A stretch of DNA of 64,000 bases from Asterias rubens (taxonomy: Eukaryota): positions 6,138,001-6,202,000 of the forward strand of contig NC_047072.1 in assembly GCF_902459465.1 (NCBI RefSeq). The letters are read 5' to 3'. Below are positions 1 through 19,700 of this stretch, piece by piece; positions within the stretch are counted from its first letter, which is position 1; each line of letters starts with the position of its first letter. The notes under the pieces were generated by a model. It was not told the origin of the DNA, ran no database searches, and saw nothing but the letters and a program-made list of their open reading frames with translations. The position numbers were made by a program, and so were the translations under genes.

Positions 1-189
1 CAACGTTACTAGGCTTTCTACGCTTACAAGGCTAGCGCAGAAATTCGGCGCTTGCACAGAAGCGGGGAATCGTGATCGTAAGCATGGAATTCGGCGGTAA
101 GCAGAGCCATGAAATTGGGCCCTGGTCTGACACTACAATCACCAGCCTCTGGTGAGCTTGGCTTCAAGTGAAACTAGGTTTCACTTACG

Positions 190-221
<32 letters not shown>

Positions 222-400
222 TTGCACTGTATCCTGCAGGACGTTGGCTCCATGAATTTTCTTTCTCCACTCTTGCCTATCTTCTCGCCTCTTCAATGTT
301 CCGGGTAGAAGGTGCTGTTCGTGATAATGTCATTTTCCCACCTCTTCCGAGGCCTACCCCGTCTATTTTTTCCAGTTACTGTTTCAAGTAGGATGCATTT
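190..400 (-). mobile_element. 3' end of an RTE-type non-LTR retrotransposon with (ATTG)n tail
   Basis: The minus strand encodes GKNRRGRPRKRWENDI, typical of LINE ORF2 C-termini, and ends in an ATTG microsatellite. Confidence 0.65.
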
Positions 401-776
401 TGGGAGTCTGTTCTTACGAATGGCAATTCTAAACAATTTAATCATTAATAAACAGTCATTGGTTGCGAGCTCAGGCCGCAGCTTTCCGCCACTTCGGGCT
501 CAAAAAATTACATTTGTGTTAACTACTTATAAAGGCCCTTTTCGAAACCATGGCTTCGGCTTTGGATTTGGCTTGTTGAGGCTCCGTTGTCTTGTCTGAA
601 GCCCTGAGCGCGTACGCCCAAAGCCTGCGCACTTGTCAAAACAACTGAGCTGAAACTGAATCCAATGCCAAATCCGATCATTTCGAAAAGGGGCAAAAAG
701 ATATTTTTGATCATAAATTGTAGTTTCAAAATGGCTGTGATTTTTCAACAGTAGCCACACTTTAAAGTCAACTCAC

Positions 777-835
777 TTTGGCGGTTCTCGCCTTGCTTTC
801 ATCCACTGGAAACAGTTCGCCATCAGGCTGAACAT
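777..835 (-). CDS. ARL13B: ADP-ribosylation factor-like 13B, first coding exon (MFSLMANCFQWMKARREPP-K); gene continues beyond the left edge
   Basis: Not in the ORF track. The minus-strand exon has acceptor ttgttttcag at 843-844, ATG at 835 and donor GTGAGT at 776. The 59-nt coding part resembles the human ARL13B N-terminus [20 protein letters not shown] and, as I recall, its 59-nt first coding exon. Confidence 0.85.
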
Positions 836-3800
836 TCCCTCCCTGAAAACAAATAACGGACAGAAGAATATCATTATAAAGATGAGTGCTCAAAACTTAA
901 ATTGCAACAATAATAATAATAACCCGTTTTTATATAGCTCTTTTCACAACCGGAGGCTTGAATCACTCCTTTAACCATCTCAGCTCCCTAGTGGGGAGTA
1001 TGCAACCTGTGCAACATTAATATGAACTACTCGGCTATAAATCAATCACAAGAACCATCTCTGCATTCACAGGTACCCATCGACAAATTTGATCTACATG
1101 TACATCCTAATAATTGGAGATATTAAAAGGCACTGGACACTATTGGTAGTTACTCAAAATAATTGTAAGCACTAAAAGTTACTTGATACGAGCAAACAGC
1201 TCCCTCTAACATCTAAAGTAACATTGTTTTTGAGAAAGAGGTAATTTCTCACTCAAATATTAAACAAATTCAGACCTGAAGCCTTTTAACAGACATCTAA
1301 AAGCACACACATTTGTGCAACAAGGATGTTTTATTATTTTTACTATTCTCTTGCAACTTTGATGACCAATTTAGTACAAATTTTCACAAATTTGTTATTT
1401 TATTCATAGAGTGTAGTACACTGAGTGTATGGTGATACACTGAGTGTACATGTATGTTGGGATACACAAAGTGAAATACTAGTCTACGACAAATTACCAA
1501 ACGTGTCCAGCGCGGGGCCTTTAAGTCAGTCAGGAAAACGTTTGCGATAAAAACGTCTACCGACACGAGGTGGTTATGAATTCCAGTACATGTAGAGGGC
1601 AGTCTACAAACAAGATGTTGTTCAATGAAAACTTACAGTCACAGTAAATATCTTGTATTCTTGTCAGAATCCTCAAGGATGATTCTCATATACAGCGTTG
1701 TGGTGAGAACTAAAGATTGAAATCTCACACCGACGACCCAAACTGAAACGATGACTCCCAATGGCCAGCTTCCTAATAATTCTCCTCCCTGGTACAGTAC
1801 CTGTGAATCATAATAATAATAAATAGTAATAATAATAAGACTTGTAGTGCGCACATATCCACCCTGCTGGGTGTTCAAGGCGCAGTCAAACCAAAAACAA
1901 AACAAAGAAAAACAGACACAACAAAATTAGTCCTTGAAAACCTGTGAAGAAAATTTTTGAAAATTAAATCTTAATGAATGACCCTGAGATGATTATGTTT
2001 TGATCTTGAACTTTTCGTTACATTTACACAGCTGCTGGTGACCATGGTGACTGCGTTGATTGATCACACAAGCAGGCCTGGAGTGCGTTTTGGCGGCGGT
2101 AACCAAAAACTGTTTCGGTTGTTGGTCGTTGGTTCTGCTGTTCAGACTGAACGATAACCGAGTTGCGAGCTTTTGGTTATGACGTCAGAAACAATTATTG
2201 GTTACAGCCGCCAAAACGCACCCCCTGATACTTCAGGAAGGCAACAAAGGCGATTGCCTCCATGCCCCAGGGTCGTTGCCTTGGTGCCCTTGGAATTTCC
2301 CTAGTAGAAATTTAAAATTTCTGCATAGGTTGCCCTTTACCAAGGAGAAAAATTCAAAGGTGCCCTTTCAAAAACTAAGCATGCAGGACCATTCCAGCAT
2401 GAAGGATGGATTTTTATAATAAAACAAAAAGGTTTTGTTCAAAGGCCATTCTAACAAACTCTAATTAACACCTTGAATACATTGATTAACAACAAAATAA
2501 GACAACAGGCCCGATACCTCACGAAGGCAACAAAGGCGTTTGCCTCCATGCCCTCTGTTCATTGCCTTACTGCCCTTGAAATACTACAGTGAAAATGTAC
2601 AATTTCCTCATAGGTTGCCCTTTACCGAGGAGAAAATGCCTTGGTGCCCCTGCCCTTCCAAAAACAAAGCATACAGGATGCCCTGTGACAACTTCCTGAT
2701 CAATGTGAATAAAACTTTGTGAGACTTTACATGCAATACCAAAAGTTTTGAACTTCTATAACTCACCTGCTACTCAAGTTTTGTCACAGCTCTCCATTGC
2801 TAATGTAAAGTACGTCAACCTGAAAACCAGATGAGAAGAACTATAAAAACAATGCTTGTAGATGCAGTACATGTACTTTACCTAGAATGTTTAAAAACCA
2901 AGTTTCAATTGCAGGGTTGCAGCGAGACCAATTTCAGTGGTGGGCAATGAATCAAATTTCACCAAAGGCGAGCGGTTAACAAAATTATTTTGTTTTGAAC
3001 AGCTTTATGATGCACAGTGTTGAATTAGTGGTGAATAATAAATTCCTTATGAAATTAACTAGTTAATTGAAATTCGCTTGGTCGTATAAATAACTCTTGC
3101 AGCTAGTGCTAGTGACTGCCTTGTTTGGCCACTCAACTCAAGCATGTATACACAATTGCATTCTTCAAAAGAAAACTCTCTTCGAAAAAGAAAACTTTGA
3201 CAAATATCTGCAACTGAAGATATTGAACTTTGAGCAAAATGATTTGTGTACATGACCAAAGAAATGGCATTGTTGTTTAGCTGCGATCACCCTCCTGTCC
3301 TCTCGACGGCCACGAGGAGGGTTCTGTTATCGCAAACTAACAACATGCCATACGTGCTTGACATATTTCCAGGATCTTTCTGAATTTGATAAAGGATAAA
3401 GGGATTGCTTTGACTTTGAAATGCAACTTCTGTAATACATGTACATCTATAGCAACATTCATTTTGTTTTTCATTATATATACAAAACTTGTATAAAATA
3501 TAAATTATACATTTTAAAACTTGAATTATCCGATCTCTTTCTTTTCAACAATAATTAAATTTGTACGCTTGGATTGGTCATTTGGTGGGTGAGTATTTAC
3601 CTAGCATGACCGATAATGATAAAATTTCTAAAAAAGGAATACAGCACCCCAGTTACTGGGTCTAATCTAAGGCCAGGGTTCGTTGCAATAACGTAATGCA
3701 CCTCCCGACGGGACGAAGGTTACGTTATCCCAACGAACTAGCCAGGGACCCAAGGGTGACCAACCGGTCCTACTAAAAGCCGACAACAAGTCCAGAGTGC

Positions 3801-3980
3801 CGACAACACGCCAACAACAAGTTCTAAATACATGTACCTCAAAAACAGCAAATAAACCAAAGACTTATTAATTAGAACTATGTGTGCTTTGTAATAAAAA
3901 CAGTTAGGCCCAAGTTATGACAAAACCTCACGACAAGTCTGAATATTTAACCATGAAAAAAAAACTTACACAGAGAGATG

Positions 3981-4169
3981 TCAGACGGACTTCCCACAAC
4001 TCCGACGGAATTCCCACAACAACGACGGAATTCCCACAACAACGACGGAATTCCCACAACTCCGACGGAATTCCCACAACTCCGACGGAATTCCCACAAC
4101 TCCGACGGAATTCCCACAACTCCGACGGAATTCCCACAACTCCGACGGACTTCCCACAACAACGACGGA
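3981..4169. repeat. Minisatellite, 20-bp unit TCCGACGGAATTCCCACAAC, 9 full copies plus a partial
   Basis: Units read directly; variants differ at the first three bases (TCC/AAC/TCA) and at GGAA/GGAC. Confidence 0.97.
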
Positions 4170-5459
4170 GGCTGTCCTCTATAGAACACCGCTGTTCAGA
4201 GCTCTACATCGAGTGCCAATTAGTTTTGCGCATGCGCGAGATGTTCAGAAAGTCCAACATGAGATGAATTATTCATAGCAGTGACCCCATCGCTGTTTTG
4301 TGCATGTTTCTATGACTTTAACAGCGAGACCGAATGACGTCAACGATGAGTTTTGTTAGACTGTTGTGAGTAAAATTGAATTTCCCTGATATTAAAACAA
4401 TGTTTGTTGTAGAGGAAAATTATTATTTTATCAAATTATTCCGTTTATATAGCAGCAAACCCTCTCTGGAATTATCAAAATCAGTGGGATTCCACCGACG
4501 TTTTTCTGACGCGGCCTACATGTTTCACATACAAACTTAACAAACGCATACACTGCACAATGTTTATACAATGTGCACACGTCACAAAAAGCGCAATTGC
4601 CCAATGCTTGTGTACATTACCCTTGATAAAAATTCTTCACCAGAACGTCGTCATGTGTTACAAAAATAAACAGGGAATTGTTTTCAAAGGGTTTGCTTTC
4701 TCAATTTTGAGTGGAAAACATCAGTTGTTATATATTTCTTACGTGTGAGGTCTATTTCTCAACAAGAAAATTCACATTACGTAGATTTTGAAGGATCAAT
4801 TCGACTCAAAATCCGACCATCGCAACTAACTTCATTGCATATTCATGTTTAGTTTTCCATCTTGGCTTTTAATTGGTCAAAAATCGCGATGACCCCAGAT
4901 CGTTTTCAACGGTTGAAAGGCTATGTTTTGTTTACGATTTTGACTCAAGAGGGCGCTCGTCAACAATTTCCCACATGCGCAAAACTAACTGTCAGCGAGT
5001 AAGCAGCGGTGAGAACACCATACCCGTGACCAACAAGTTGTCAATGACAATGCCATTTTTCTAACTAAACTAAAGAACATTTTTAGCTTAGTTAGCCTTT
5101 TTAATAAGCACGAAAATGTGATTACCGCAAAGCAGCACTAGTGAAATTAGCCCTGGGTTATGGAGTGTGATGGCTGGGAATGGCTTCCAAATTAACTGAC
5201 GTTTATTCAGCAAATAAAATGGTGTAGGCCTAGAATTCAAACAATTGAATTGAAAATGAAAACAAAATAAAAATTAAAATCGTATTCGTAGGTAATTTAT
5301 TTAAAATCTGCTCAGTCCATTTTTGCACTAAAATTAACATTTATTTTGGATTTCAGTAAATATTGACAATATTACCTATCATCAGCTTTACTGCACACAA
5401 ACTAATCTCAAAAAAAATACGAAAAAGAAGATTTTACTTGTAAAACAAAATATCCTTAC

Positions 5460-5600
5460 CACACAGCGGACTTTTTCTGTATAATTTCCAGTTTAGTCAG
5501 TAGAGCAACACAGCGTAAATTAGCACGACGTCGTGTCAGGGAACCATACACGATAAAAATACCAATTAGTCACGTGATATTGTTTTGTTTCCGCAGCAAC
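5460..5600 (-). promoter_or_regulatory. Probable ARL13B promoter and 5' non-coding exon: X-box-like GTTTCCGCAGCAAC (5587-5600), E-box GTCACGTGAT (5569-5578), CCAAT (5562-5566), donor G/GTAAGG at 5459
   Basis: Motifs read directly. The ARL13B coding exon has an acceptor 7 nt upstream of the ATG, so an upstream exon is required. Assigning this donor to it is inference. Confidence 0.45.
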
Positions 5601-5823
5601 ATTTATTATTTTGTTCATGTGATGGGGCGCCCTCTTAAGTTTCAAAAGCAACTCCTGTTTAGAAGTCATTTTATGCTTCAATGGTCGTCTTGTACAACAA
5701 ATCTGGTTAAAGAAGTGTACTAAAAATGCATACTTCTATTCAAAACACCAAGTTTTCCTCAAATTAAAATTTACGTGAAATATTTAATAATATAGAGTGG
5801 CATACCTCTTCAGGTATGTATGG

Positions 5824-5906
5824 AACACGGTGGCCGAGTGGTTAAGGCGTTAGACTTAAGTTCTAATGGACGTAAGTCCTCATGGGTTCGAACCCCATCC
5901 GTGTTA
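5824..5906 (+). tRNA. tRNA-Leu, anticodon TAA, long variable arm
   Basis: Acceptor stem AACACGG/CCGTGTT, A-box TGGCCGAGTGG, anticodon arm TTAGA-CTTAAGT-TCTAA, variable arm GGAC..GTCC, B-box GGTTCGAACC, T-rich terminator a few nt downstream. Confidence 0.96.
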
Positions 5907-7788
5907 GTAATTTTCAAAAATTTTTGAGTTTGATTTTTTTTTTTTTTTTTACACACTTCCTCGGATTACACCAATATTTTCAGCCACTCTTGGTACTTTA
6001 TGTTGGTCCAGGGAATAGAAAATCCTACTTCCGTCCCGTAACTGTATTTAGAAATTTATGTAAAAAGAAAGATTTACTAGAGTGGGATTCAAACAACGGC
6101 CTCCGGATTAAACGTGCCGCATTATCTGTAGGTTGTTGGTTCAAATCCAAACTCTAGTCAATTTTTCTTTGTTCAACCCCAAAAATCATTTAAAACTTTA
6201 ACCAGTCAGTTTCCCTTGTGGTTTATATCAGTTTCTGTGACAAAACCAGTTATTCCAATAGTCCGCGCTAGCCTGCGACCCTTTGGTCAAACTGGTTTAG
6301 CAAACTTGGTTCTTTTGACTTTGAAAATTATAACAGTGCTACAGCAAACAACACTCCTAAAATATTCAACAATTTAACGCAAGAACATCTTCATTAAATG
6401 ACACTTTATTTTTCACAGGTCAGCCCTTCCCTAAAGCTCCATTTTATTTTAAACAAAATTAATGCATTTACAAAATTTCACAGGAATGCATAATTTTACT
6501 ATTTCATTAATAAGTATGATTTGATATCATGTTTCTCATGTATGCTTTACCCAACCTCAACAAATAGCAAGATGATCAACAATGTCTGTGTATGATTTTC
6601 CGTGGAACATTATAGCTCATCGGAGATTACTTCCCAAACTTCCACTCCTTACGTTTGACAAATCCGACATTTCTAACAGCTGCTAGGTTTTGAATCCTAC
6701 TTAATGTAGTTTTTGAAAGTTTTGTTTCATTCAATGAAGTAAATAAGTTAATCAAACTAGTCAGTGAAAACTCTATGGGAGACATTGGAACAATAGGTTT
6801 ATGGAGTTACTTTAGCACAAAAATGAGCTAAGCACACAAAATGTTGCTTACCATAACAAGATTACCATCATAAACACCGTCTGTGACTGGTTTCCTGCAA
6901 TTTTTGCTAAGCAGACAATGACAATTTTCTGCTTAGATCATAAGAAATTCTGTGAAAGCACAAAAAGCAGAGAAGATGAATTTACAAAGACCTTTTCGCA
7001 ATTACCCATTGTGCAAGGTGTTGAATTAGGTGCATGCTGGTCTAGCTAGCGATCAAACTATATGGCTAGCTAGACCAGCATGCACTTCATTCAACTTCTC
7101 TGTCGTCTAACATGTCTAACGCGTGCATATCAAGTATTTGCTATAAGGTCCATGTAAGTCTCCAACCACCAAGTATAAGTAACACTCCGTTTGAAATGCG
7201 TATTGTAAACATAGCTACATGTAAGATAATAAAGTAACACAAACCACTGTCAAATTTGTTGTTGTTTTGTTTACAGGGCCTAAATAAATATAGAACAAGT
7301 GTAGAAAAACTACATTTGATCCTTTTACAATGTTGCTCTGCAGAACAATTTTTTCATTTTTCAAGCACTGCATAATATAGAACAACTATATAACTAGGCC
7401 TAATGGTAACTGAGCCATGACATTGATTTTGATCTCTCGTATTTTCTCTAGCAATTTGTTGGCAATGGGGTCTATTTTGTAAACAAACAATGTCAGAGGT
7501 CAAATTATTGATACAAAAACTCACCTCCTAGCATACATAAAAGACATGTTAGACTCATAACACACAGGGAAGAAAAAAAAATCAACAAGAAAAACATCAC
7601 ATGAACTGTATAAAAAAAGTTTATCGGTCCTGTATTTAAAAAACAAACAAAAAGACATCTAGCAAGTTTTAAAAATGGAAACATAAACCACTAAAAAGAA
7701 CAACTTACAACACAAAGCACTTTTAAGCTTTTTAAGTTTGTATGAAGGTTAGTCCAGAAATTCCTTGAGGTTTAAAATGATTGCGAAT

Positions 7789-10700
7789 CTACTCTTGTTG
7801 GTAACCATTGGCAGTCTCAACGTCACCATATCCTAAGTCTAGCTTTTCCTTCTTGATTTTAACCTCATCCTCATCTTGAGGCACCTCTTCTTCATCGTCA
7901 GGTGGATACGATACCAGGCCAACATCCTCAGCTCCTTCAATCTTAACCTTGACATCTGGTGGCTCCTCGTCTCCATAATCGGTACGATCACGTTCTCGCT
8001 TACGGTCACGTCCGCGGTCCCTGTCACGTCTGTCCCGGTCTCGGTCACGGTCACCACGATCACCACGGTCACGATCCCTGTCGCGATCTCGCCTTCGTCG
8101 GTCACGGTCTTTGTCACGGTCCTTGTCACGGTCTCGTCCGCGGTCCCTGTCGCGATCTCTCTCAATGGCTTCTTGGAGGTCCTTGTCCTGGTCCTTGTCA
8201 TCATTTTCTGCTTCGACGCCTTCTTTTTCAACGTCTCGTTCACCCTCTCGCTCTCGATCACGGTCCCTCCTGCGCCTTTCCCGATCACGGTCCCGATCGC
8301 GGTCCCGATCGCGATCACGATCACGATCGCGATCACGGTCTCGATCACGGTCCCGCTCCCTGCGCTCTCTGTCACGATCCCGATCCCTATCACCCCTATC
8401 TCCTCTGTCTCCCCTATCTCCTCGATCCCCTCTGTCTCCTCGATCCCTTCTTCCGCGGTCCATGTCTCTACTATCTCTATCGACACGCTCCCGGCGGCGC
8501 TCCCTGTCTCGATCATGGCTCCTGCTGCGATCTGGTCGTTCGTGTTGATTTTTGTCTCGATCCTCTTCATCTCTGTTTGAAAACAAATCAAAGATTGGGT
8601 CTGTTGAGCTTATAGCTTCACCCGGCAGGCTTAAATATTTAAGGTGCAGGCTACATAGCTGTTGTGCCTACAGTCACAACGAAAAAGCACTTACATTGGG
8701 TTGCTTTTTGAAAACAAATTATACTTATTTCATGTGAGAGGGGGTGGGCGGAGGTTCACAAAAGGATTGGGGTCCAGTGTTTACACAGATGAAAAGGCAG
8801 AACTAAGTGTCTGGGACATGTGACATTTTTTGTTTGCAATGATATGAGAATGGACGAAAGAGACAAAAAATACTTTGTAAGAGCAAAAAAGAAGGAATTT
8901 GTAACCAGCGTTTTCTGCTGATCAGCTGAGAAGTTGAATGCCCCACTAATTTTTTCCGTTTATAAATATATGTATTATATACTAACCAGGGTTTGCCATT
9001 AACATCTTTAGTGAATTTTAGCATAGAGTTATATATATAAGAACTAGAGGGCGCACTGGCCTATATAAGTGGCCCGACATGCGCGCAGGCGGCCATTTTC
9101 TAAGTTGACAAAACATCATTGCACAGCGTGTGTTTGTGCTGCCATTTTCTAAGTTGACAAAACATTATCGCGTAGCGTTCAATAAACACAAACTCCAGCG
9201 TGTACTTCATATTCAACGCGCGTACAGAATGGCGCATGTGTCTCCTTGCGGCCCCGTCGTGTTTATGCAAGAAGCATCACCAGTGCGCCCTCTAGTTCTT
9301 ATATATAACTCTATGCTTTTTAGTGACTAGCCAGCAGGACCAGTGAGCTTCTTATTTGTCTAGTCCATCAGCTTGTTCTAAATAGTCTGTTTGAACTGAA
9401 TACAGAGATTTTGTTCAACAATGAACTAGTTAGCCAGACCACTTGCAGTTAATTTTTTACTGCTGCTCATGTGTTGTCCTTCGGATGGGAAGTTAAGCCG
9501 TTGTTCCCTGTGTGTTGTGTAATGCACATTAAAGAACCCAGTGCACTTATCTAAAAGAGAAGGGGTTCGCCCTGATGATCCTGGTTTGATTAGTAGCATA
9601 TTGCACCACAGGAGTTTGTTAACCATTACATTACAAAGGAACTGTACATGTTTGGTAATTGTCAAAGACCAGTGTTCTCACTTGGTGTATCCCATCAAAA
9701 GCATAAAATAACAAACCTGTAAAAATTTGGGTTCAATTGGTCATCGAAGTTGCGAGAAAATGACGAAAGAAAAACCACCATTGTCAGACAAATTTGTGTG
9801 CTTTCACATAGGAATAAAAGACTTCTAGCTAGAAATCTTTTAGTATTTTAGTGAGAAATTACCTCTTTTTCAAAATCTACGTTACTTCAGAGGCAGTCGT
9901 TTCCCACAATGTTTTATACTATCAATAGCTCTCCAATGCCCGTTACCAAGTCAGTTTTTAAGTTAATATTTGTTTTGAGTAATTACCAAACGTGTACCCT
10001 CCCTTTAACTGGCATTTGGCCAGTAGAGCACTGTTAACACTGCTAATGCAAATGACTCACCTTGCAGCTGCTGCTTGTGAAGGTTCCTCCCTTCCAGAGT
10101 GACGGACATTGTTTTCAGGGCCACCTCGTCTAGTTCCTCCCAATCCACCACCTACCGATTAAAGAAAAACACACTCATCATTGTCAGACAACACAGACAG
10201 TTGTTTAAGCCAGTGTTTTGGGTCATCATTTGTGATGCGATCCAGAAAAAATTAGTAATTTTCAAAACTTTTTTTCAAAATCAGGCATCTTCTATTTTGA
10301 ATGGTGTTTTGACAACTATCAAAATGGAATTAATCAAGATTGGCTCAAATAACATTTTTGTTGTTGAATATGGCAAAAGTTTGATTTACACTGGTTGCCA
10401 AAGGGAAACATTTCATGTGTTAAATTGGTTGAAGCACATCCACCTTGAGAGATACTGAGAACAAAATGGTTTCCTGTTCAAGAAAAAGATGACTTAAAGG
10501 GTCTATGTACTTTTTCTAGGACAAAAAAACACAAAGTCCACAGATTTACATTAAAATTTACACATTTTGAAGATAATGATATAAGAAAGCTTCCCTGAAA
10601 TTATTACTTGCTGAGGTGCTGTAGTTTTTTAAAAAAACGAGTAAAACAATCGCATAAAAATAATTTACATCTCAGTGAACTTGAGACGAAAAAATTTGTA

Positions 10701-13700
10701 CCATGTAAAAAGGTATTTTCATGACATTGTTTTACTCACTCAGCTACAGCACCTCAGCAACAAATATTTTAAGGTACGCTTTCTACTATCATTATTATCA
10801 AACGTTGTAAGTTTAATGTAAATCTGTGGACATTGTGTTTTGTGTTACAAAAAGTACCCAAATCCTTTAAGATCTAAAGTAAAAAGAAATGGTCACAAAG
10901 CAACTGTTGTCATCATAAAGACAAAAAGACACAAAGACATAGGAAATCTCCGCTTACGTTAAGCATGTTTCACATGTTGGCATGTGAATCTTGGCTTGTA
11001 TGCATGCGTACTTCATGTTACTAGACATTCTTCGCTTACAACGCAAGCGGAGAACAGTGATCGCAATCGCAGAATTCGGCAGAAAATTAGACCCTTCTGT
11101 ACAGGGCGCTGTAAGTGCAGAATACCGTGGTAAGCAGTCTTTGAAATTGTAACCCAGATTTGTTTGGTTTTCTTTACCTAGTCTCCGTGGCAACCATCCT
11201 TTAACCGTCCCCTCTCTCATAACATCCACCAAGACTCTCCTCCCATCAATCTTCTTGCCGTCAGCATACTTGTAGGCATCTACGGATTAAAGACAATTAA
11301 AAAGTCAGAACATGAAGCGAACGACGCCGAAACATGCAGACTACTGTCACAACAAAATCGCAATATCACCTGCAAGGGTTGAAGGTCATTCGAGGTGTGT
11401 CAAAGGTCATATCACTTCTGATGACATCATGTCTCAAGCTTGACGACACGAGAGAAGAGAAGCTTTGCACATCTTGAAGTTTGACCGATATTTATACTTA
11501 CAACTTTACCCTGTTATTTTAAAAGTTTTTTTTTATTTTTTTACAATGGAGGAAAGACATTTAAGTTAATCTATTACGTACATCTGTAAACATGGGAGAA
11601 CAATTTGAGAAGTCTAGGAATCCAAGATTAAATTAGTTGACGATCCAATAGAAAATATAGGAGTGTATAAATTCTCAGAATGTCAAATGTACATTTCTTT
11701 AGCCGCCACTTCAATAGTATGGAATAGTTCACCACCTGAAACTCAACATCACAAATCCACTGACATTTTAGGGCTATGTCAAACAAGACAATCTACAGGC
11801 AATAATTTTCAAGCAACTTTTGCGTAATGTTTGAAGCTTGAACAGTGTGGAAAATAAGAAAGAGTAAACTTGTGGTAAACCATGTTTTAAACAAAATGTA
11901 GGGATATACGTTGGCTCTAAAAATAGCAGGTGTGGTCTTGACACGTCGTGAACAGTAGATTCTGCTCTGAGCATTCTCCCGAGTACCAGCCGAGCATAGA
12001 CGATGTGACCTATGTTTACATTTAAACCGCCCTCTGTTGACAAAACACTGTACACGTCATGTTTCGCCGGGCAAATAAGTGCGTAGTCATGGTAAGATTG
12101 CATGTACTTGCTAGCTGGCTGCCAAATCACAAAGGTTTTGCCCGGCGGTATGCGCGCGAATCATGTTATGGTTTTCGAGTGACGTCAGAGGTCACAACGC
12201 CTATACATGTACTGTTTGAAACATGGAGCGACAACACTACTCATTAGCGTAGCATGGTTTTACCTGGGAGTATACTTTTTAATTTCAAAATACCTGATCT
12301 TAAACTTTAAACCAGGGCTCAGGAAAAATTAAACTGCAGATAGAGCTTTAAATAATTTGATGATGAGCAGTGAGGTCCTTGGTGGCAGTAGATGAAGCCT
12401 TTCCGTTGAAGGATTGACAATGTCTGCTCTCACCAAGCTTCACCCTTCATCAGGACCTTTTCATTACCGAAGCTCCAGCATTAGCTCTGGCTGAAGCTCT
12501 AGCCTAGGCTCGGGCAAGCCAGAGCCAAAGTTTCCAAAAGAGGCCATTACTCATACACAGATCACTCACCACATATTTCTCCATGTTATGATAAATGATC
12601 AATATATAATCAAGTTTTCTGAACATCCCCAACCCCAGCTGGGACCAATTTCCTAAAGCCTTTACACACAAAACATTGCTGAGCAAAGACGAACCATGCT
12701 GAGCAAAGACGAACCATGCTGAGCAAAGACAAACCATGCTCAGCAAAGCAATTTTTTACGAATTTTGTTTTTGCCCAACAGACTTTAGCAAATTGGCCCC
12801 CCATTTGCACAGTTTCATACCTACTCATGTGCAAGAACAATGGGATTACCAGCTATACAAGAAATACACAAAAACTTTTAAGGACAAATGTTACTAAAAC
12901 TGTTGTTACCATTTCTGCTGCCGGCATAGATAGTAATATTTTACGCAAATGGGCTTACCACCCCAGCTAAGCTTTGTCACAGAATAACTAACAACAATTA
13001 ACTTTACCACAATGACTACTACCTTACAGGTCACAATAACCAACCTGCATCCATGTTAGAAACTCACCGTTAAAACTTACAAAAGGTTTGACGGAAGATA
13101 TCTTATTGTCACCAAAATCAACTTTCTGTCCCTCGTGTTGAATATTTTACAACAGAGAATGTTTGGGCTTACCAAACCCAGTGTAAATCATACCACTGAA
13201 AAATGTAACATTAAAAAAAAAAAAAAAAAAAAAATACACAAAGACCACTATACAAGTACATGTACCTGTTTCCCAATTAGAGTTTTAAAAACGGGGGAAG
13301 AAAAAAAGAAGCAAATAAACAGGCGGCCAACAAACCCAAAAACTCACACTCCCCGTCCATAACTTCTTCATTACCTTCAGTTCTGATAACTGCAATATAG
13401 TAATCTGGCCTGCACTTTTCCTCCGTGGGTGCAGTTCTCTACAGACATGTGCACACCAAGTTGGGCTTACCGACCCACCATCATTTCAGACTTTAAAACC
13501 AGCTTACCCAGGCCCTCCCCTTCCCCCGAACAAAAAAGCAAAACATAATAAGTTGGTTGCTTACTCTGCTCCCTACAACTATTGTTGACCACCATATGCA
13601 TCGTTGACTCCGCCAAAAACTTACAACACTCAAAAGAACCCAGGTTCCACCTCAGCTGTGCACGGTCCACCAACGTTGGGCTTACCAAACCCGATGACAA

Positions 13701-16700
13701 CAATCACTTACATGAAGGCTTTACTTCAGCTAACAGTGTTTGTAAGTCAATCAAAAAGGCAAAACATGCTTCTAGGTAGTTCTTAAGAGCAAATCACTTA
13801 CGTAAAGAGGGGACATCGTCGAAACCTCCAAACAGGAAAAGACAAAGGCAGTCAAATCTTTCCGGTAAAGTACTTCAAGATGTTCAACAAATCATGGGCT
13901 TACCAACCCGGAAAATTTACAAAATTGAGTTTTACAGCACAGGCCTTACCAGCCTGTCATCGGTATGATTATTAGAAATTGTTTTGTAACAAAGTACATG
14001 TATTAGGTCTTGTCCAGAACTAAGATCTTTAAACAATTTTACATAAAAAAAAGACTTCGAAAAAAAGTTAATGTGCATTCTTTGGTAAAACTTTTCCAAT
14101 TCTATTTAAGTTTAAAAAGTGCAGTTTCTATTCGAAATTGTCAAAATGCATAGTTTGACACCAATATCTGAATAAGAAAAAACCAAAGACACAAATTTAC
14201 CTGGCACCTTACCAAGTCTTGCCAAAACACATCACACGCCGAGCCATCAAGATGGGAACAAGGTTGACACATTCCAGGTATGAGGTTGTGACGCTGGGTA
14301 ACTTACCCGGAACATGACACATACCAGGGGTCCAACAATTTGGGCACAAAAAATAACAGAGTTTTTAAAACGGTTGAGCTTCTTAGCCGAAGACTTAAAA
14401 CATAAAATGATTGGGACCACTATTCGTTGTTGTTTTTTTCAATGTAATGCCGATTAAAAGACCAAATTATCAAGAAAGATACAATAAAAGTTGCCAGTAA
14501 AAGTTTTAGGTGAATAAAGTGACTACTTGTTGAAAAAACAGCAACAAAAACTGGCATAGTTTTTTTTGTTACCAAAAACACCAAATCAATATGAAGGTCT
14601 ACATGTTTGTGGTTATTGTAGTTGATTTTTACAGGATCAAACAAAGAGTTATCGCAGGACCCCCTGGTATGGTCTGCACGTTTGTTACTTTTTAATTCCT
14701 TACTTTGGTTTATGATTTCTGATGTATGTCTGTTATTGTGATATATGCTTGAGAAGTCTCATCAATGCATGCATTATTGTTTGGTTTGTTTTATAAAAAT
14801 TCAGAAACGTTAATAGCCCTAATGAGATTTTGGTAGCCCGAAAAACACATTACGTCTCGAGTCACAACACAAATTGGTCACCGAAAGTATTTTATTTTAC
14901 AATACCATCAGCACAGTTCATTATTGTTTGTGATGTTAATCTTTGCATTATTTTTCCACTAGCTCGCTGGGCTATCAAACTGGGTAAATGAGTTGACCGG
15001 CTGTAAATCTGGAAAACCCGGGCTAGCGGGCTAGTGGCAATTCCGACCCCTGCGTGTATGTTGATAAAAGAGAATGTAGGTTCAAACTAACCTGTTCTTT
15101 GTTGATGCATGTTGTAAAGATATTCAGCACAGCTAGCTTTTTGAACTCATTGAAATGAGTACTCTTCTACAGTACAGTACATGTATGTCTTCTAAGACGT
15201 TTAACATTTTGGTGTCTTGTGACTTTGTGAGAGAAAGTTTTTACTGTATGGTTGTTAAAGCAAATTCCCCTCCCCCTTTCTATACCCACCCACCCCCATT
15301 GGCCCCTTGGGTATGTCTGTGTGTTGAATATGGGGAGGCCAGTGTACCGCTTACCATATCATATACAAACCCAAATCCATGAAATGGATTAATGACTAGG
15401 CTTAGAGAGACAGCAAGGCTGAGGCTTTGTCATGCCAGGCCGACTGACTGAGTGGGGGCAGCACACTATGTGTGGCTGTATTGAAAGGGTGACAAAAAGA
15501 TACATTTACGTCAGTGTGTGGTATAGGCAACAAGGCTAGATTACAGTGGGGTGGGTAACTTGAGTTACCCTTATACATGTAATTCCCTTAACAGTTTAGT
15601 TTCTAGAAATTACAAACTACTCCTAAATACAGTAACTTCGGTAAACAAATACCAAACTCCTTGTCTGTACATGTGTTATAACCCTCATGACACAAATGCA
15701 TGAAAAGACTCTTCCCATGAAATATTTTGTAAATTGCACATCATCGCAGGTGCACACTAACTGCACTACTGCTGGGCAAAATGAGGGGACATCCTGCTTT
15801 TTGGATGGGGGTTGAATGTGGCGTGAAACTTACACATTTGTTCGTCTGCCTAGTGCACAATTCTTTGGCGCTTGCCATAGTGTCTGTGCCCATGCAAGAA
15901 TATAATTAGCATATTTCATGGGAAGGACTCATCGAAGGGGCCAATGAGTGATACTCACATGTGATTGCTTGAAGGCACTGGACACCTTTGGTAATTGTCA
16001 AAGGACAGTATTCTCACTTGGTGAATGAAATAAGACATCTGTGAAATCACTTGGTCATCAAAGTTGCAAGAGAATAATGAAAGAAAAAACACCATTGTGC
16101 ATACATTTGTGTGCTTTCAGATGCATAATAAAAGGCTTCAGGCCTGAAGTCGTTTAATATTTGAGTGAGAAATTACCTCTTTCTCAAAAACTATAATACT
16201 TCAGAGGGAGACGTTTCTCACAAAGTTTGAAACTATCAACAGCTCTCCATTGCTTGTTACCAAATAAGTTTGTATGCTAACAATTGTTTTGAGTAATTAC
16301 CAATTAGAGTCCAGTACCTTTAATGCCAAAACCAGGCACTTCCTGTCAGAACTTAAAACTGGGTTTACTTGCTTTCCAAAAAGATTAGAAGAAAAAAATT
16401 TTTAAAAAATCTATAGCACCAAATCCATATTCATGATGTCACATCGATCAGTTATCATGGCCAATGTTTCCGTTGTTCTAAATTTTAATGCAAACTGAGA
16501 AGTGACTGATTCTGGCTACACATCTGTCAGTAGACCTCTTGTGCTTTAACATCCATTGCTGAAGTCAAATAACGCAAATGTGCAAGCGTGTACATGCCAC
16601 GCACAACTCTCAGCCAATGAAAGTTCCTTCTTTGACCTCAGTGAGGGCGCTGTTAGTGTTTGTTGCATCATGTGCGCATCATGTGCAAGGGGTCTACAGA

Positions 16701-19700
16701 ATTTTTCTTCAATCTGGGGAACACTGCCAACGATAGTGAAGGTACTGATTGAGCTCAACATCTCAAACAGCATCTGCAAAGTTTACACCAATCTGTGGTG
16801 GATCCAGCATACAGGGATGTCAAAGGTCATCTAAAGGTCATTGGTAATATTTACAGATACACCGTATACAAACCTATCTCTGCTTACCATAGGAACACTC
16901 TTACAGGTACCAGCTTAATTTTGGTATGTCAGTGCAAACAAAACGCTGTTTTTTTTTAAATGAAATAAACTCTTTGCGACTCAAGCTTTTCAAAATTGCA
17001 ACAATCTTGTATTTCATATAGTGCAAAGATATCCCTTTTTTAAGTGTGCACATAACCTCCCTCACTAGAGATTCATTCTGAAATTGAGCCGATACTTTTG
17101 AACTGAAAACTTGTTTAATTTAATAAAATCCCTGAACACAATTTTAAAAAACAGGAGACGGCGGTTTCAAGACCTGTATTTATCTTGGAACTGCAGTTTA
17201 AAAACTACCCTTATTAGTGTTTAATTAACTATAAAATTGAGCATCCAAAATGTATCTACGAATCCCAAACCAACGCCCAGTCTAAAATATTGTTAATTCA
17301 ATATTTCTGTGACAGTCTACGGAATCAAATGCCAGGAGCATTCCTGCCTGTTCTAGGCTAATGCCTCTGAAGATGAGAACACAGAACTTGCCAAAGGAGT
17401 TTTACATCATTCCCTTACAAATTTTTGGGTTTGTATATACTCAGCGCCTTGAGTATCTTGAGTACCTTGTTTGGTAGATACGTGCGCTATATAAGACTTC
17501 AATATTATTATTATTATTATTATTATTAAACATATGTGACCCGCTCTGACGGAATGAGGAATGTCTAGTAAAGTCTCATTTCGTGTAATTTGACACCGAA
17601 CATAATCATAACAAACAATTATTGAAAATTATTGAATTTTTTAATTTTTTGTATTTCTACACTTTTAGGTTGCCTAAATCTTGATTAAACTTACTATGGT
17701 CTTACCTTTTCGTCAAAAGATTACTAAAGATGTAAAAACAGACGATTTCTGAGCCATGTTCTTGACGTAATTATCCAAAAATATTCCAAATCCCACGGGA
17801 CAGACAGCGAACATTCATTGAAAACACCAAATTTGGCGAGCGTCGCAAAACTTTTCACACAACTTGCATAGCGCCACCAGGAGTACCATTGGAAAGCCAA
17901 AGATTAGAGGTGTCTAAATATAGCCACCAAAAACATGTGTCAACACTGAAAGGGGTTCAAAGGTCACCAAAGGCAAACCCTGTTTTATCAGCGATGACAT
18001 CTCTCATTCATAAATCCGCGTCGCGAGATTTAGTATGGCTCACAGACCGAGGCGTTGTTTATCCATGCAGCTTGAGAGTCCGATCACCCGACCCGGTCTT
18101 GTTGCCATAGCTAGTTGCAGCGCTGGTAATACGACAATGTACACACGAACACTGCGCGGGTACCATGCACAAACTTTGCTACACGTACGACGTATGGAAC
18201 AGTGGAATGTTTATCGAACGTTGGGAAAACAGTGTCTAATTTCCATCATTGTTTCGTGGTTTTTCAAGGTTGAATTGTTCAAAACCAAAATAATTCTGAA
18301 TGTTAAAGGAACAATCTTTCAGTTAAACTTCATGCTGGGTAAGAAATTTCGCTAAAATCATGAGAAACATGCACGGGGAAATTGCGAATGTTACCTGGTC
18401 TTCAAGCCGAGTATACCCGTGGGGGTTGATGCTATGCGCTGAGTGACAGCTGTCTTTACTATGTTTTGACTTGACGGAACAAAACTCGCCTTTCAAGTTG
18501 GAAATATCAACGCAAATTGCTCTAAAATTTCAGGTAAACATTGTCAAACTTATTGGTGAAATTGTCTACACATTATAATCTAACTTCTCGTTGAGTTGTT
18601 TGTTCATTTTGGTAATTTTGTTTGCCTGACTACGGGGGGTTAAAAATTGATATTTTCATTATCGTAAACAAAAATATTAATATTATTTTAATGAGTGTGT
18701 GAGACGTCGCGTTTTTTCAAATCAATTTTTCTGGAGTTTGTGTTTTCCAAAACGGGTCGTAAAATTAAGCGTCAAGGTCGTCGTAAAATTCCACATTATT
18801 TCAGACAGGAAGGTCGTATGGTCTTGATTTTTATTTCATTTAAAATGTAAAGATTTGCTTGTTTGGAATATTATGAAATATGCAAATGTGAAAATCACTA
18901 GACATTCCTTATTTCGTTAGAGCGGGTCACATATAAGAATTTACTAGAGAGTAACTAGAACCTGCGACCTTTGGATTAACATGCCGGTGGTCAACCAACT
19001 GAGCTTATCAAGCCCTTTTGTTAGCGGTCTCTCCCTAGTCATCTATCTTATTTAAAGAATTTAAGAAATTTGTGACTAACAAACCCATACAGAACGGTCC
19101 GAATACATGTTAAAAGTCCATTTTGTCATTTCAGTGGAAAAACATTTGTCTCTGGATTTTGCCAAAACATTGCATCTCGCACATAAAAGCTTGGTGCAAC
19201 AATGTCAAATCTCGGTCTGCACATATGCACTTCCTAAGTTAGTCCTTACTCTATGTGAGATCGTGAGTAGCCCATAAGGATTCATGCTCGAGTTTAATAA
19301 CACAAGCGCCCTCTAGTTCTATTCAATAACAGTAGGGTCAAGACTCGCTGTATTCAAGCTATCTGGACGATACCATTGTTTACGGGAGGGAGGGGATTTG
19401 GTACTTACTGTGCATGTCTCTCTCGTGTTCATACTCTATAAATGCATATCCTCTTGGCTTGCCAGATTTCTTGTCATGAACAACGTGGATCTGGTGATTA
19501 ATTAAGGGGTGAGAGTCATTGCTGGGAAAGATGTATAAAACTAGAATAAAAATGGTAAGCCCGGTTTTCATACTTCCCACGGATACGAAGCCAATTTTGA
19601 CGTCGCACGACAGTTTTCACAACGATTCTTTCGCAGGCGTTGAGTACAAGTCAATAATTTGTTGCAAATTTGTGGCGTAAAAATGCGTATCGCATTCGCA

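Follow-up and report, generated by a model that had tools for sequence, protein, structure and literature searches.

An array of pseudo-5' splice sites in an snRNP70 intron of Asterias rubens: a candidate sensor of free U1 snRNP

Introduction

The abundance of U1 snRNP, a small nuclear ribonucleoprotein, governs splicing, premature polyadenylation and RNA retention, which makes it important how cells measure U1. The only worked U1 example so far is the vertebrate U1-70K switch, which has three to four sites. In intron 7 of vertebrate SNRNP70, an alternative 3' splice site is activated by U1 that binds downstream of it, at cryptic 5' splice sites A-C; these sites scarcely serve as donors themselves, what remains of the intron is retained and the RNA is degraded by nonsense-mediated decay (NMD) (PMC3798272). 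U1-70K and U1C are thereby placed under feedback control (Rosel-Hillgartner et al. 2013, PMC3798272). Here we analyze the corresponding intron of the Asterias rubens snRNP70 (U1-70K) gene within a 64-kb stretch of contig NC_047072.1 (positions 6,138,001 to 6,202,000; hereafter the window, numbered from its first base). This intron carries a dense array of donor-like GTAAG sites on the sense strand, which is probably a lineage-specific enlargement of the U1-sensing pseudo-5' splice site cluster of the gene. All of the sequence ingredients of the switch occur in the same intron, and a comparably large array of another flavour occurs in a second invertebrate (assembly GCA_016584305.1, locus L002); for these reasons an expanded U1-sensing switch appears the most likely reading.

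An original prediction, made from the window's sequence, had cited the vertebrate precedent (NMD, cryptic 5' splice sites, cross-regulation of U1-70K and U1C), and the publication describes it in the same way (PMC3798272). The window and the vertebrate exon 7a switch share the gene, the intron after ...ERDMH and U1-complementary sites downstream of a strong acceptor with an early stop, the acceptor of the window being a candidate. They differ in that vertebrates have three to four sites over roughly 0.1-0.2 kb, whereas the window has about 18 over 1.4 kb, and in that the human acceptor lies at +643, while the array begins 5.1 kb into its intron. Acceptor use and U1/U1C dependence are established for the vertebrate switch, whereas the candidate in the window is known from sequence.

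The U11 snRNP-binding splicing enhancer (USSE) consists of two tandem U12-type 5' splice sites with a AUAUCCUU-like consensus, read by U11. It is found in the U11-48K and U11/U12-65K genes; a gene for an snRNP protein here carries repeated 5' splice sites of its own snRNP, an upstream 3' splice site is activated and an unproductive mRNA results, a homeostatic sensing logic like the one considered here (PMC5473595, PMC3584512). The USSE differs from the array in being a U12-type pair read by U11 rather than many U2-type GTAAG sites presumably read by U1, and the genes are unrelated. All array sites are of the U2-type form G/GTAAG, with no tandem U12-type sites of the USSE kind among them.

Two further systems are comparable in part. 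Decoy exons are cryptic exons with several competing splice sites in long retained introns of splicing-factor genes, and human SNRNP70 intron 7 is named among the retained introns that have them (2018, bioRxiv 10.1101/258897). A decoy exon, unlike the array, is one short cassette; that of SNRNP70 showed little activity in the assay, and no array of this size is described (bioRxiv 10.1101/258897). The ultraconserved intronic pseudo-5' splice site of ENOX1/Enox is never spliced and acts as a U1 snRNP-bound silencer (Ding et al. 2026, PMC13100119), making splicing sensitive to the level of U1-70K (PMC13100119). It resembles what the sites of the window would be, an intronic 5' splice site motif that binds U1 and stays unspliced, but is one 9-nt site in an unrelated gene, conserved in sequence across animals, whereas the window has many sites with rapid turnover between lineages.

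A literature search returned the vertebrate switch, the U11 analogue, decoy exons and the single ENOX1 site, but no description of large arrays in invertebrate snRNP70. If such a switch operates in non-vertebrates with five-fold more sites, copy number would be a natural variable for how a sensor reads concentration, autoregulation would predate the split of the lineages compared, and questions of cooperativity, interference between neighbouring U1 particles and exon definition versus intron detention would open up. The array also offers compact sequences for minigene tests.

The donor-like array

On the sense (minus) strand, positions 12958-14306 contain 15 GTAAG, against one on the opposite strand and 1.8 expected. 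The sites and the additional donor-like sequences are as follows.

12950..14310, minus strand: the array, 15 GTAAG or about 18 U1-complementary pseudo-5' splice sites (motif counts, predicted duplex energies)
12958, 13027, 13080, 13172, 13470, 13507, 13564, 13624, minus strand: GTAAG of the array (motif count)
13685, 13711, 13801, 13903, 13949, 14212, 14306, minus strand: GTAAG of the array, continued (motif count)
13742, plus strand: sole plus-strand GTAAG of the array segment (motif count)
13067, minus strand: extra donor-like site ACG/GTGAGT (sequence)
13374, minus strand: extra donor-like site AAG/GTAATG (sequence)
14200, minus strand: extra donor-like site CAG/GTAAAT (sequence)
12569, minus strand: extra donor-like site GTGAGT (sequence)
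near 12820, minus strand: extra donor-like gtatg (sequence)

The original prediction had listed 15 minus-strand GTAAG, and all were recovered, each one base off its earlier coordinates. Its opposite-strand count of about one and its compositional expectation of about 1-2 agree with the values of 1 and 1.8 found here, and the five further donor-like sites that it named are present (13067, 13374, 14200, 12569 and near 12820). Elsewhere in the window GTAAG occurs 0-7 times per 2-kb bin, and first-order Markov simulation of the same 1.39 kb gave a mean of 1.8 and a highest count of 8 (5000 trials). Among the 5-mers of the segment, GTAAG shows the strongest over-representation, with GGTAA, TAAGC and AAGCC next in order. 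The segment is G+T-rich and C-poor (G-C skew 0.20, T-A skew 0.18).

Complementarity to U1 follows the same pattern. A site was counted as a U1-register site if it matched CAGGTAAGTAT, which is complementary to the 5' end of U1, at ≥6 contiguous bases in register; the array has 16 of these per 1.4 kb, or 18 with G permitted at +3, which makes the segment a cluster of cryptic 5' splice sites predicted to pair with the U1 5' end. Across the 64-kb window the mean is 1.5-1.8 per 1.4 kb, with maxima outside the array of 6 (sense) and 8 (antisense), and the whole intron (11280-19408) has 33 U1-type sites in sense versus 10 in antisense. Within the array the density reaches at most 5 U1-register sites per 300 nt. 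Duplex energies predicted against AUACUUACCUG range from -5 to -11 kcal/mol for the array sites; five GGTAAGCCC sites have predicted values of -8.0 to -8.2 kcal/mol, versus -7.0 for the real exon 7 donor. The original prediction had proposed that C at +6 would permit U1 pairing yet turn the sites into poor donors; by predicted U1 duplex these sites are no weaker than the real donor. A predicted duplex of -6 or better is found for 21% of GT positions in the array versus 4.6% for the window outside it.

Toward its 5' end (14331-19408, minus strand) the intron has a sense bias as well, weaker than that of the array, with 10 GTAAG versus 1 CTTAC in 5.1 kb.

The snRNP70 gene and its intron

Translation of the minus strand yields U1-70K exons and an RD-rich tail. 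The array is located 5.1-6.5 kb into an 8.1-kb intron bounded by the following exons.

19409..19491, minus strand: snRNP70 exon 7 (equivalent of vertebrate exon 7), ending ...EYEHERDMH (translation, sequence, mRNA contigs)
11280..19408, minus strand: the 8.1-kb intron, corresponding to vertebrate SNRNP70 intron 7 (flanking ERDMH and AYKYADGK exons)
11176..11279, minus strand: exon 8, the next constitutive exon, starting at 11279 after ccgtag (translation, sequence)

The RNA data used here are assembled contigs, which lose rare forms. The mRNA contigs of four runs span exactly 19409-19491, where the donor CACA/GTAAGT has its GT at 19408-19407. In one of them (X10) a contig reaches 19409 and goes straight on into the opening 30 bases of exon 8, so that the exon 7-exon 8 junction is read directly; the joint between exons 8 and 9 (11176/10149) is seen in four runs. 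The intron thus lies between an exon ending ...EYEHERDMH and one beginning (S/N)AYK(H/Y)ADGKKIDG, with the junction present in an RNA contig. Because of the ERDMH and AYKYADGK exon boundaries, the intron is positionally homologous to vertebrate SNRNP70 intron 7, and the earlier placement of the array in that intron was correct by both translation and junction contig.

Within exon 8 (11179-11277, minus strand) the encoded U1-70K departs from the VDVER(G/A)RTVKGW of every other animal sequence compared. This departure is confirmed in RNA contigs of both the window's species and a close relative.

A candidate acceptor at the edge of the array

Acceptors were ranked with a crude scoring scheme that considers the pyrimidine tract, YAG and the lack of an AG upstream. 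The highest in the intron, 23.2 versus 20.3 for the real exon 8 acceptor, belongs to the first of the following features.

14167..14192, minus strand: candidate alternative 3' splice site, ggttttttcttattcag/ATATTGG with 14167 as the first exon base (crude acceptor score)
13941..13950, minus strand: first donor-like site downstream of acceptor 14167, CTG/GTAAGGCC (sequence)

Acceptor 14167 lies at the array's upstream edge; three donor-like sites immediately precede it and about fifteen follow. Joining exon 7 to 14167 would introduce a stop after 18 codons, near 14114 in the translation, and the next acceptors (13195 and 12852) would lead to early stops too. The site CTG/GTAAGGCC would close a 218-nt exon with acceptor 14167 and has the same 9-mer as a cluster in a fish-like locus (see below).

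An expanded U1-sensing switch would work as follows. Intact U1 snRNPs would pair with many G/GTAAG sites on the nascent transcript, site occupancy climbing with U1 snRNP supply, and bound U1 would define the upstream cryptic acceptor (candidate 14167) by exon definition, while the crowded, mutually interfering donors would rarely be spliced themselves. The product would be exon 7 joined to intronic sequence with an early stop, and/or an RNA that retains the intron's 3' part; NMD would then remove the transcript, or the nucleus would hold it back, leaving less U1-70K when U1 is plentiful. For the window we infer U1 binding, acceptor use, NMD or retention, and feedback, which together would make the array a sensor of free U1 snRNP.

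Two other roles for the sites were considered. A recursive-splicing array was rejected because AG precedes only 3-4 sites. Protection from premature polyadenylation, which the original prediction had suggested, found no support. A 2.4-kb stretch across the array (12283-14696, minus strand) has no AATAAA or ATTAAA, versus 14 across the remaining intron; from composition about 2 would be expected in the stretch, so the lack of hexamers is not significant and may be due to chance.

RNA evidence from the intron

The 3' part of the intron is covered above the 5' part in three of four libraries (X1, X2 and X14). In X14 the depth is 20 over the array, 0-8.5 over the upstream intron and 75 over the exon; in X1 and X2 the array is covered through to exon 8 at depths of 4-52, with nothing over 14634-15809. 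A 773-nt contig of X1 runs unspliced from exon 8 across its acceptor into the intron at a depth of 40, versus 219 for the spliced form (18% of exon depth). These depths are an indirect hint of partial intron retention, and the rise in coverage toward exon 8 resembles the human pile-up that starts at the alternative acceptor (PMC3798272). This intron may commonly be retained far outside the vertebrates: two metatranscriptome contigs from other marine organisms (L001 and L003) contain spliced U1-70K exons 1-7 and read on into the intron after E(R/K)DMH.

The RNA contigs of the window's species bear on a reading in which the array binds U1 but takes part in no poison-exon feedback. The intron would be detained, forming a nuclear or chromatin-bound reservoir that is spliced later, and acceptor 14167 would have no role. 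The unspliced coverage of the array and the exon 8 acceptor, with no cryptic junction among the joints listed, is consistent with detention, as are the spread of the sites over 1.4 kb (at most 5 per 300 nt, versus 11 in L002 and 6 in the fish-like locus) and the listing of human SNRNP70 intron 7 as retained with decoy exons (bioRxiv 10.1101/258897). However, the array's upstream edge is exactly where the best acceptor, followed by an in-frame stop, lies, an arrangement like that of the vertebrate switch, and contig data cannot separate nuclear from cytoplasmic RNA. We regard detention without feedback as unlikely.

A region further upstream in the same intron (17706-18931) has an RNA contig depth of 37-126, several times that found over the remaining intron, and the contigs differ from the window by about 2%. 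One X1 contig of 2708 nt includes the region, the other 1.7 kb of that contig being located elsewhere; the region may represent a duplicated fragment, a nested transcript or an element of low copy number.

The same intron in other species

Comparison loci were obtained by a first-exon search for U1-70K proteins. Matches to exon 1 only were left out, their contigs of 1-3 kb falling short of the intron. Two loci (L005 and L011) contain N gaps, and the Polistes locus (L011), with 1230 N in its intron, was left uninterpreted. A protein search with the last-exon reading frame for close relatives gave no match, a search that used a spurious reading frame within the intron to reach orthologous intron DNA brought up the window's own species and no other, and a protein search with an insect query returned insects only. 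Values below are sense-strand U1-register sites in the intron after ERDMH, followed by the maximum elsewhere in the locus.

L002 (GCA_016584305.1, invertebrate): intron 6.9 kb; cluster of 19 per 1.4 kb and 11 per 300 nt; elsewhere 7 and 5
L009, fish-like protein: intron 5.2 kb; cluster of 6 per 300 nt; elsewhere 3
L004, insect-like protein (from its sequence): intron 5.1 kb; 4 per 300 nt; elsewhere 3
L010, Anoplophora glabripennis: intron 4.6 kb; 4 per 300 nt; elsewhere 4
L008, compact genome: intron 684 nt; 1 site

The invertebrate L002, whose exon 1 is 67% identical to that of the window, has its array about 1 kb before exon 8; the sites are mostly GG/GTAAGT and GTGAGT in G-rich sequence. 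In the fish-like locus the cluster (10679-10950) lies 4.2 kb into the intron and 1 kb before exon 8, and its six donor-like sites directly follow the best internal acceptor of the intron. Three of them are GGTAAGGCCC with an upstream G-run (also written GGTAAGGCC).

The fish-like locus also has a separate donor-like trio at intron +450 to +590, the place expected from the published human sites.

Comparison lends support to the idea of an expanded module through the 19 sites of L002, the six-site fish cluster behind a strong acceptor and the common word GGTAAG[GC]CC; as a universal feature it did not hold. Several results weigh against an expanded U1-sensing switch in the window. The two insect loci are marginal, their 4 sites per 300 nt being no higher than the background maximum, and together with the lack of a cluster in the compact genome this indicates that the feature is not universal. 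Local alignment of the fish cluster and the window array was no better than for shuffles, with only GGTAAG[GC]CC in common, and sequence conservation with the vertebrate element was not found in the one fish-like locus compared. In a close relative (organism B) the array differs by 1.5-5.6% and the same intron elsewhere by 2-7%; since the array behaves like the rest of the intron, there is no block conservation. Among the RNA libraries, X10 covers the whole intron evenly at about 20-25, versus 3036 for the exon (0.7%), like plain pre-mRNA. Finally, the joints listed include neither one from exon 7 to 14167 nor one from any array site to 11279, in contigs that lose rare forms.

A repeated word within the array

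The original prediction had noted a longer word common to five sites, and both the word and its spacing are confirmed. The 10-mer GGTAAGCCCA has five copies in the window, all within the array (12959, 13173, 13471, 13686 and 13904; gaps of 214, 298, 215 and 218 nt), exact in 5/5 copies and usually with GGG two or three bases upstream.

13895..13909, minus strand: copy 1, GGG-TT-GGTAAGCCCA (sequence)
13677..13692, minus strand: copy 2, GGG-TTT-GGTAAGCCCA (sequence)
13462..13476, minus strand: copy 3, GGG-TC-GGTAAGCCCA (sequence)
13164..13179, minus strand: copy 4, GGG-TTT-GGTAAGCCCA, downstream of the intron's second-best acceptor (13195) (sequence)
12950..12964, minus strand: copy 5, GGGG-T-GGTAAGCCCA (sequence)

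With the motif removed, the units between copies align no better than shuffles (mean z 0.5), and the other ten GTAAG occur at irregular, non-periodic offsets. Tandem duplication was rejected as the origin of the array, since the units resemble each other only through the motif. The copies are exact in mutually unrelated sequence, suggesting that the motif has been kept, or re-created, amid diverging surroundings.

The spacing raises the question of a functionless relic, that is, an old tandem duplication of a unit of about 215 nt with a donor-like word, in a G+T-rich background. Intervals of 214-218 nt suggest such an origin, the segment is skewed toward G+T, and in the close relative the array is no more conserved than the rest of the intron. 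Neutral decay should erode a 10-mer, yet this one is exact in every copy while the units are otherwise unlike; ten further GTAAG lie off the period, the composition-matched simulation never exceeded 8, and L002 and the fish-like locus have clusters of their own in this intron, independent of the one in the window. Given the exact retention of the motif and the clusters elsewhere, we consider a neutral relic quite improbable.

Across the loci compared, the window's array has 6 copies of the word GGTAAG[GC]CC, the fish cluster 3 and the L002 intron a single one, all ten on the sense strand; elsewhere in these loci there is only one, antisense, with an expectation of 0.14-0.49 per strand. GGG upstream and CCC downstream flank the core in all five copies of the window and in the three fish copies. 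We tentatively suggest, as an outside possibility, that GGG-N(1-3)-GGUAAG(C/G)CC (six in the window, five of them about 215 nt apart, and three in the fish) is a U1-sensing element of the U1-70K gene that is both ancient and specific. It would be a pseudo-donor with weak structure, and the number of its copies would set the gain of U1 homeostasis; at least two invertebrate lineages would have enlarged it, each on its own, to about 18-19 sites.

The flanks could also mean that GGG..GGUAAG(C/G)CC is a small hairpin or protein-binding word for a factor other than the U1 5' end, its donor likeness being secondary. Consistent with this, stems of 3-7 bp are predicted, with GGUAAG within or beside the loop, and with CCC or GCC at +6 to +8 no pairing to U1 positions 1-3 is possible. 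However, the fold energies of the motif hairpins are indistinguishable from those of shuffled sequence (z -0.2 to -2.1), and the hairpin was rejected as a candidate for this reason; two thirds of the array sites are without the extension and have only GTAAG in common, and the L002 array uses GTAAGT and GTGAGT, again without it. A non-U1 word is therefore very unlikely.

A scan of metagenomes for two GGTAAGCCCA 195-225 nt apart returned 77 loci, none of them window-like by blastn, and these are thus chance matches.

Repeat status of the segment

The claim that the segment contains no recognisable transposon is indirectly supported. Tandem Repeats Finder reported no tandem array in the segment except a poly-A run, and an Rfam search of the array found no known RNA family. 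Summed RNA word depth over 12338-14327 is 0-42, as for single-copy sequence, versus 1e4-1e5 in the flanking repeats.

11940-12337, 10348-10944, 15810-16397: flanking repeats with RNA word depth of 1e4-1e5

With no tandem array, unalignable units and single-copy depth, the segment has the properties of neither a dispersed repeat nor a tandem satellite.

Just downstream of the array in the sense direction, a 20-nt unit (TGCTGAGCAAAGACGAACCA, plus strand) is repeated in 3.6 copies at 96% identity (12677-12748), and a weaker 24-nt repeat pair lies at 12469-12515.

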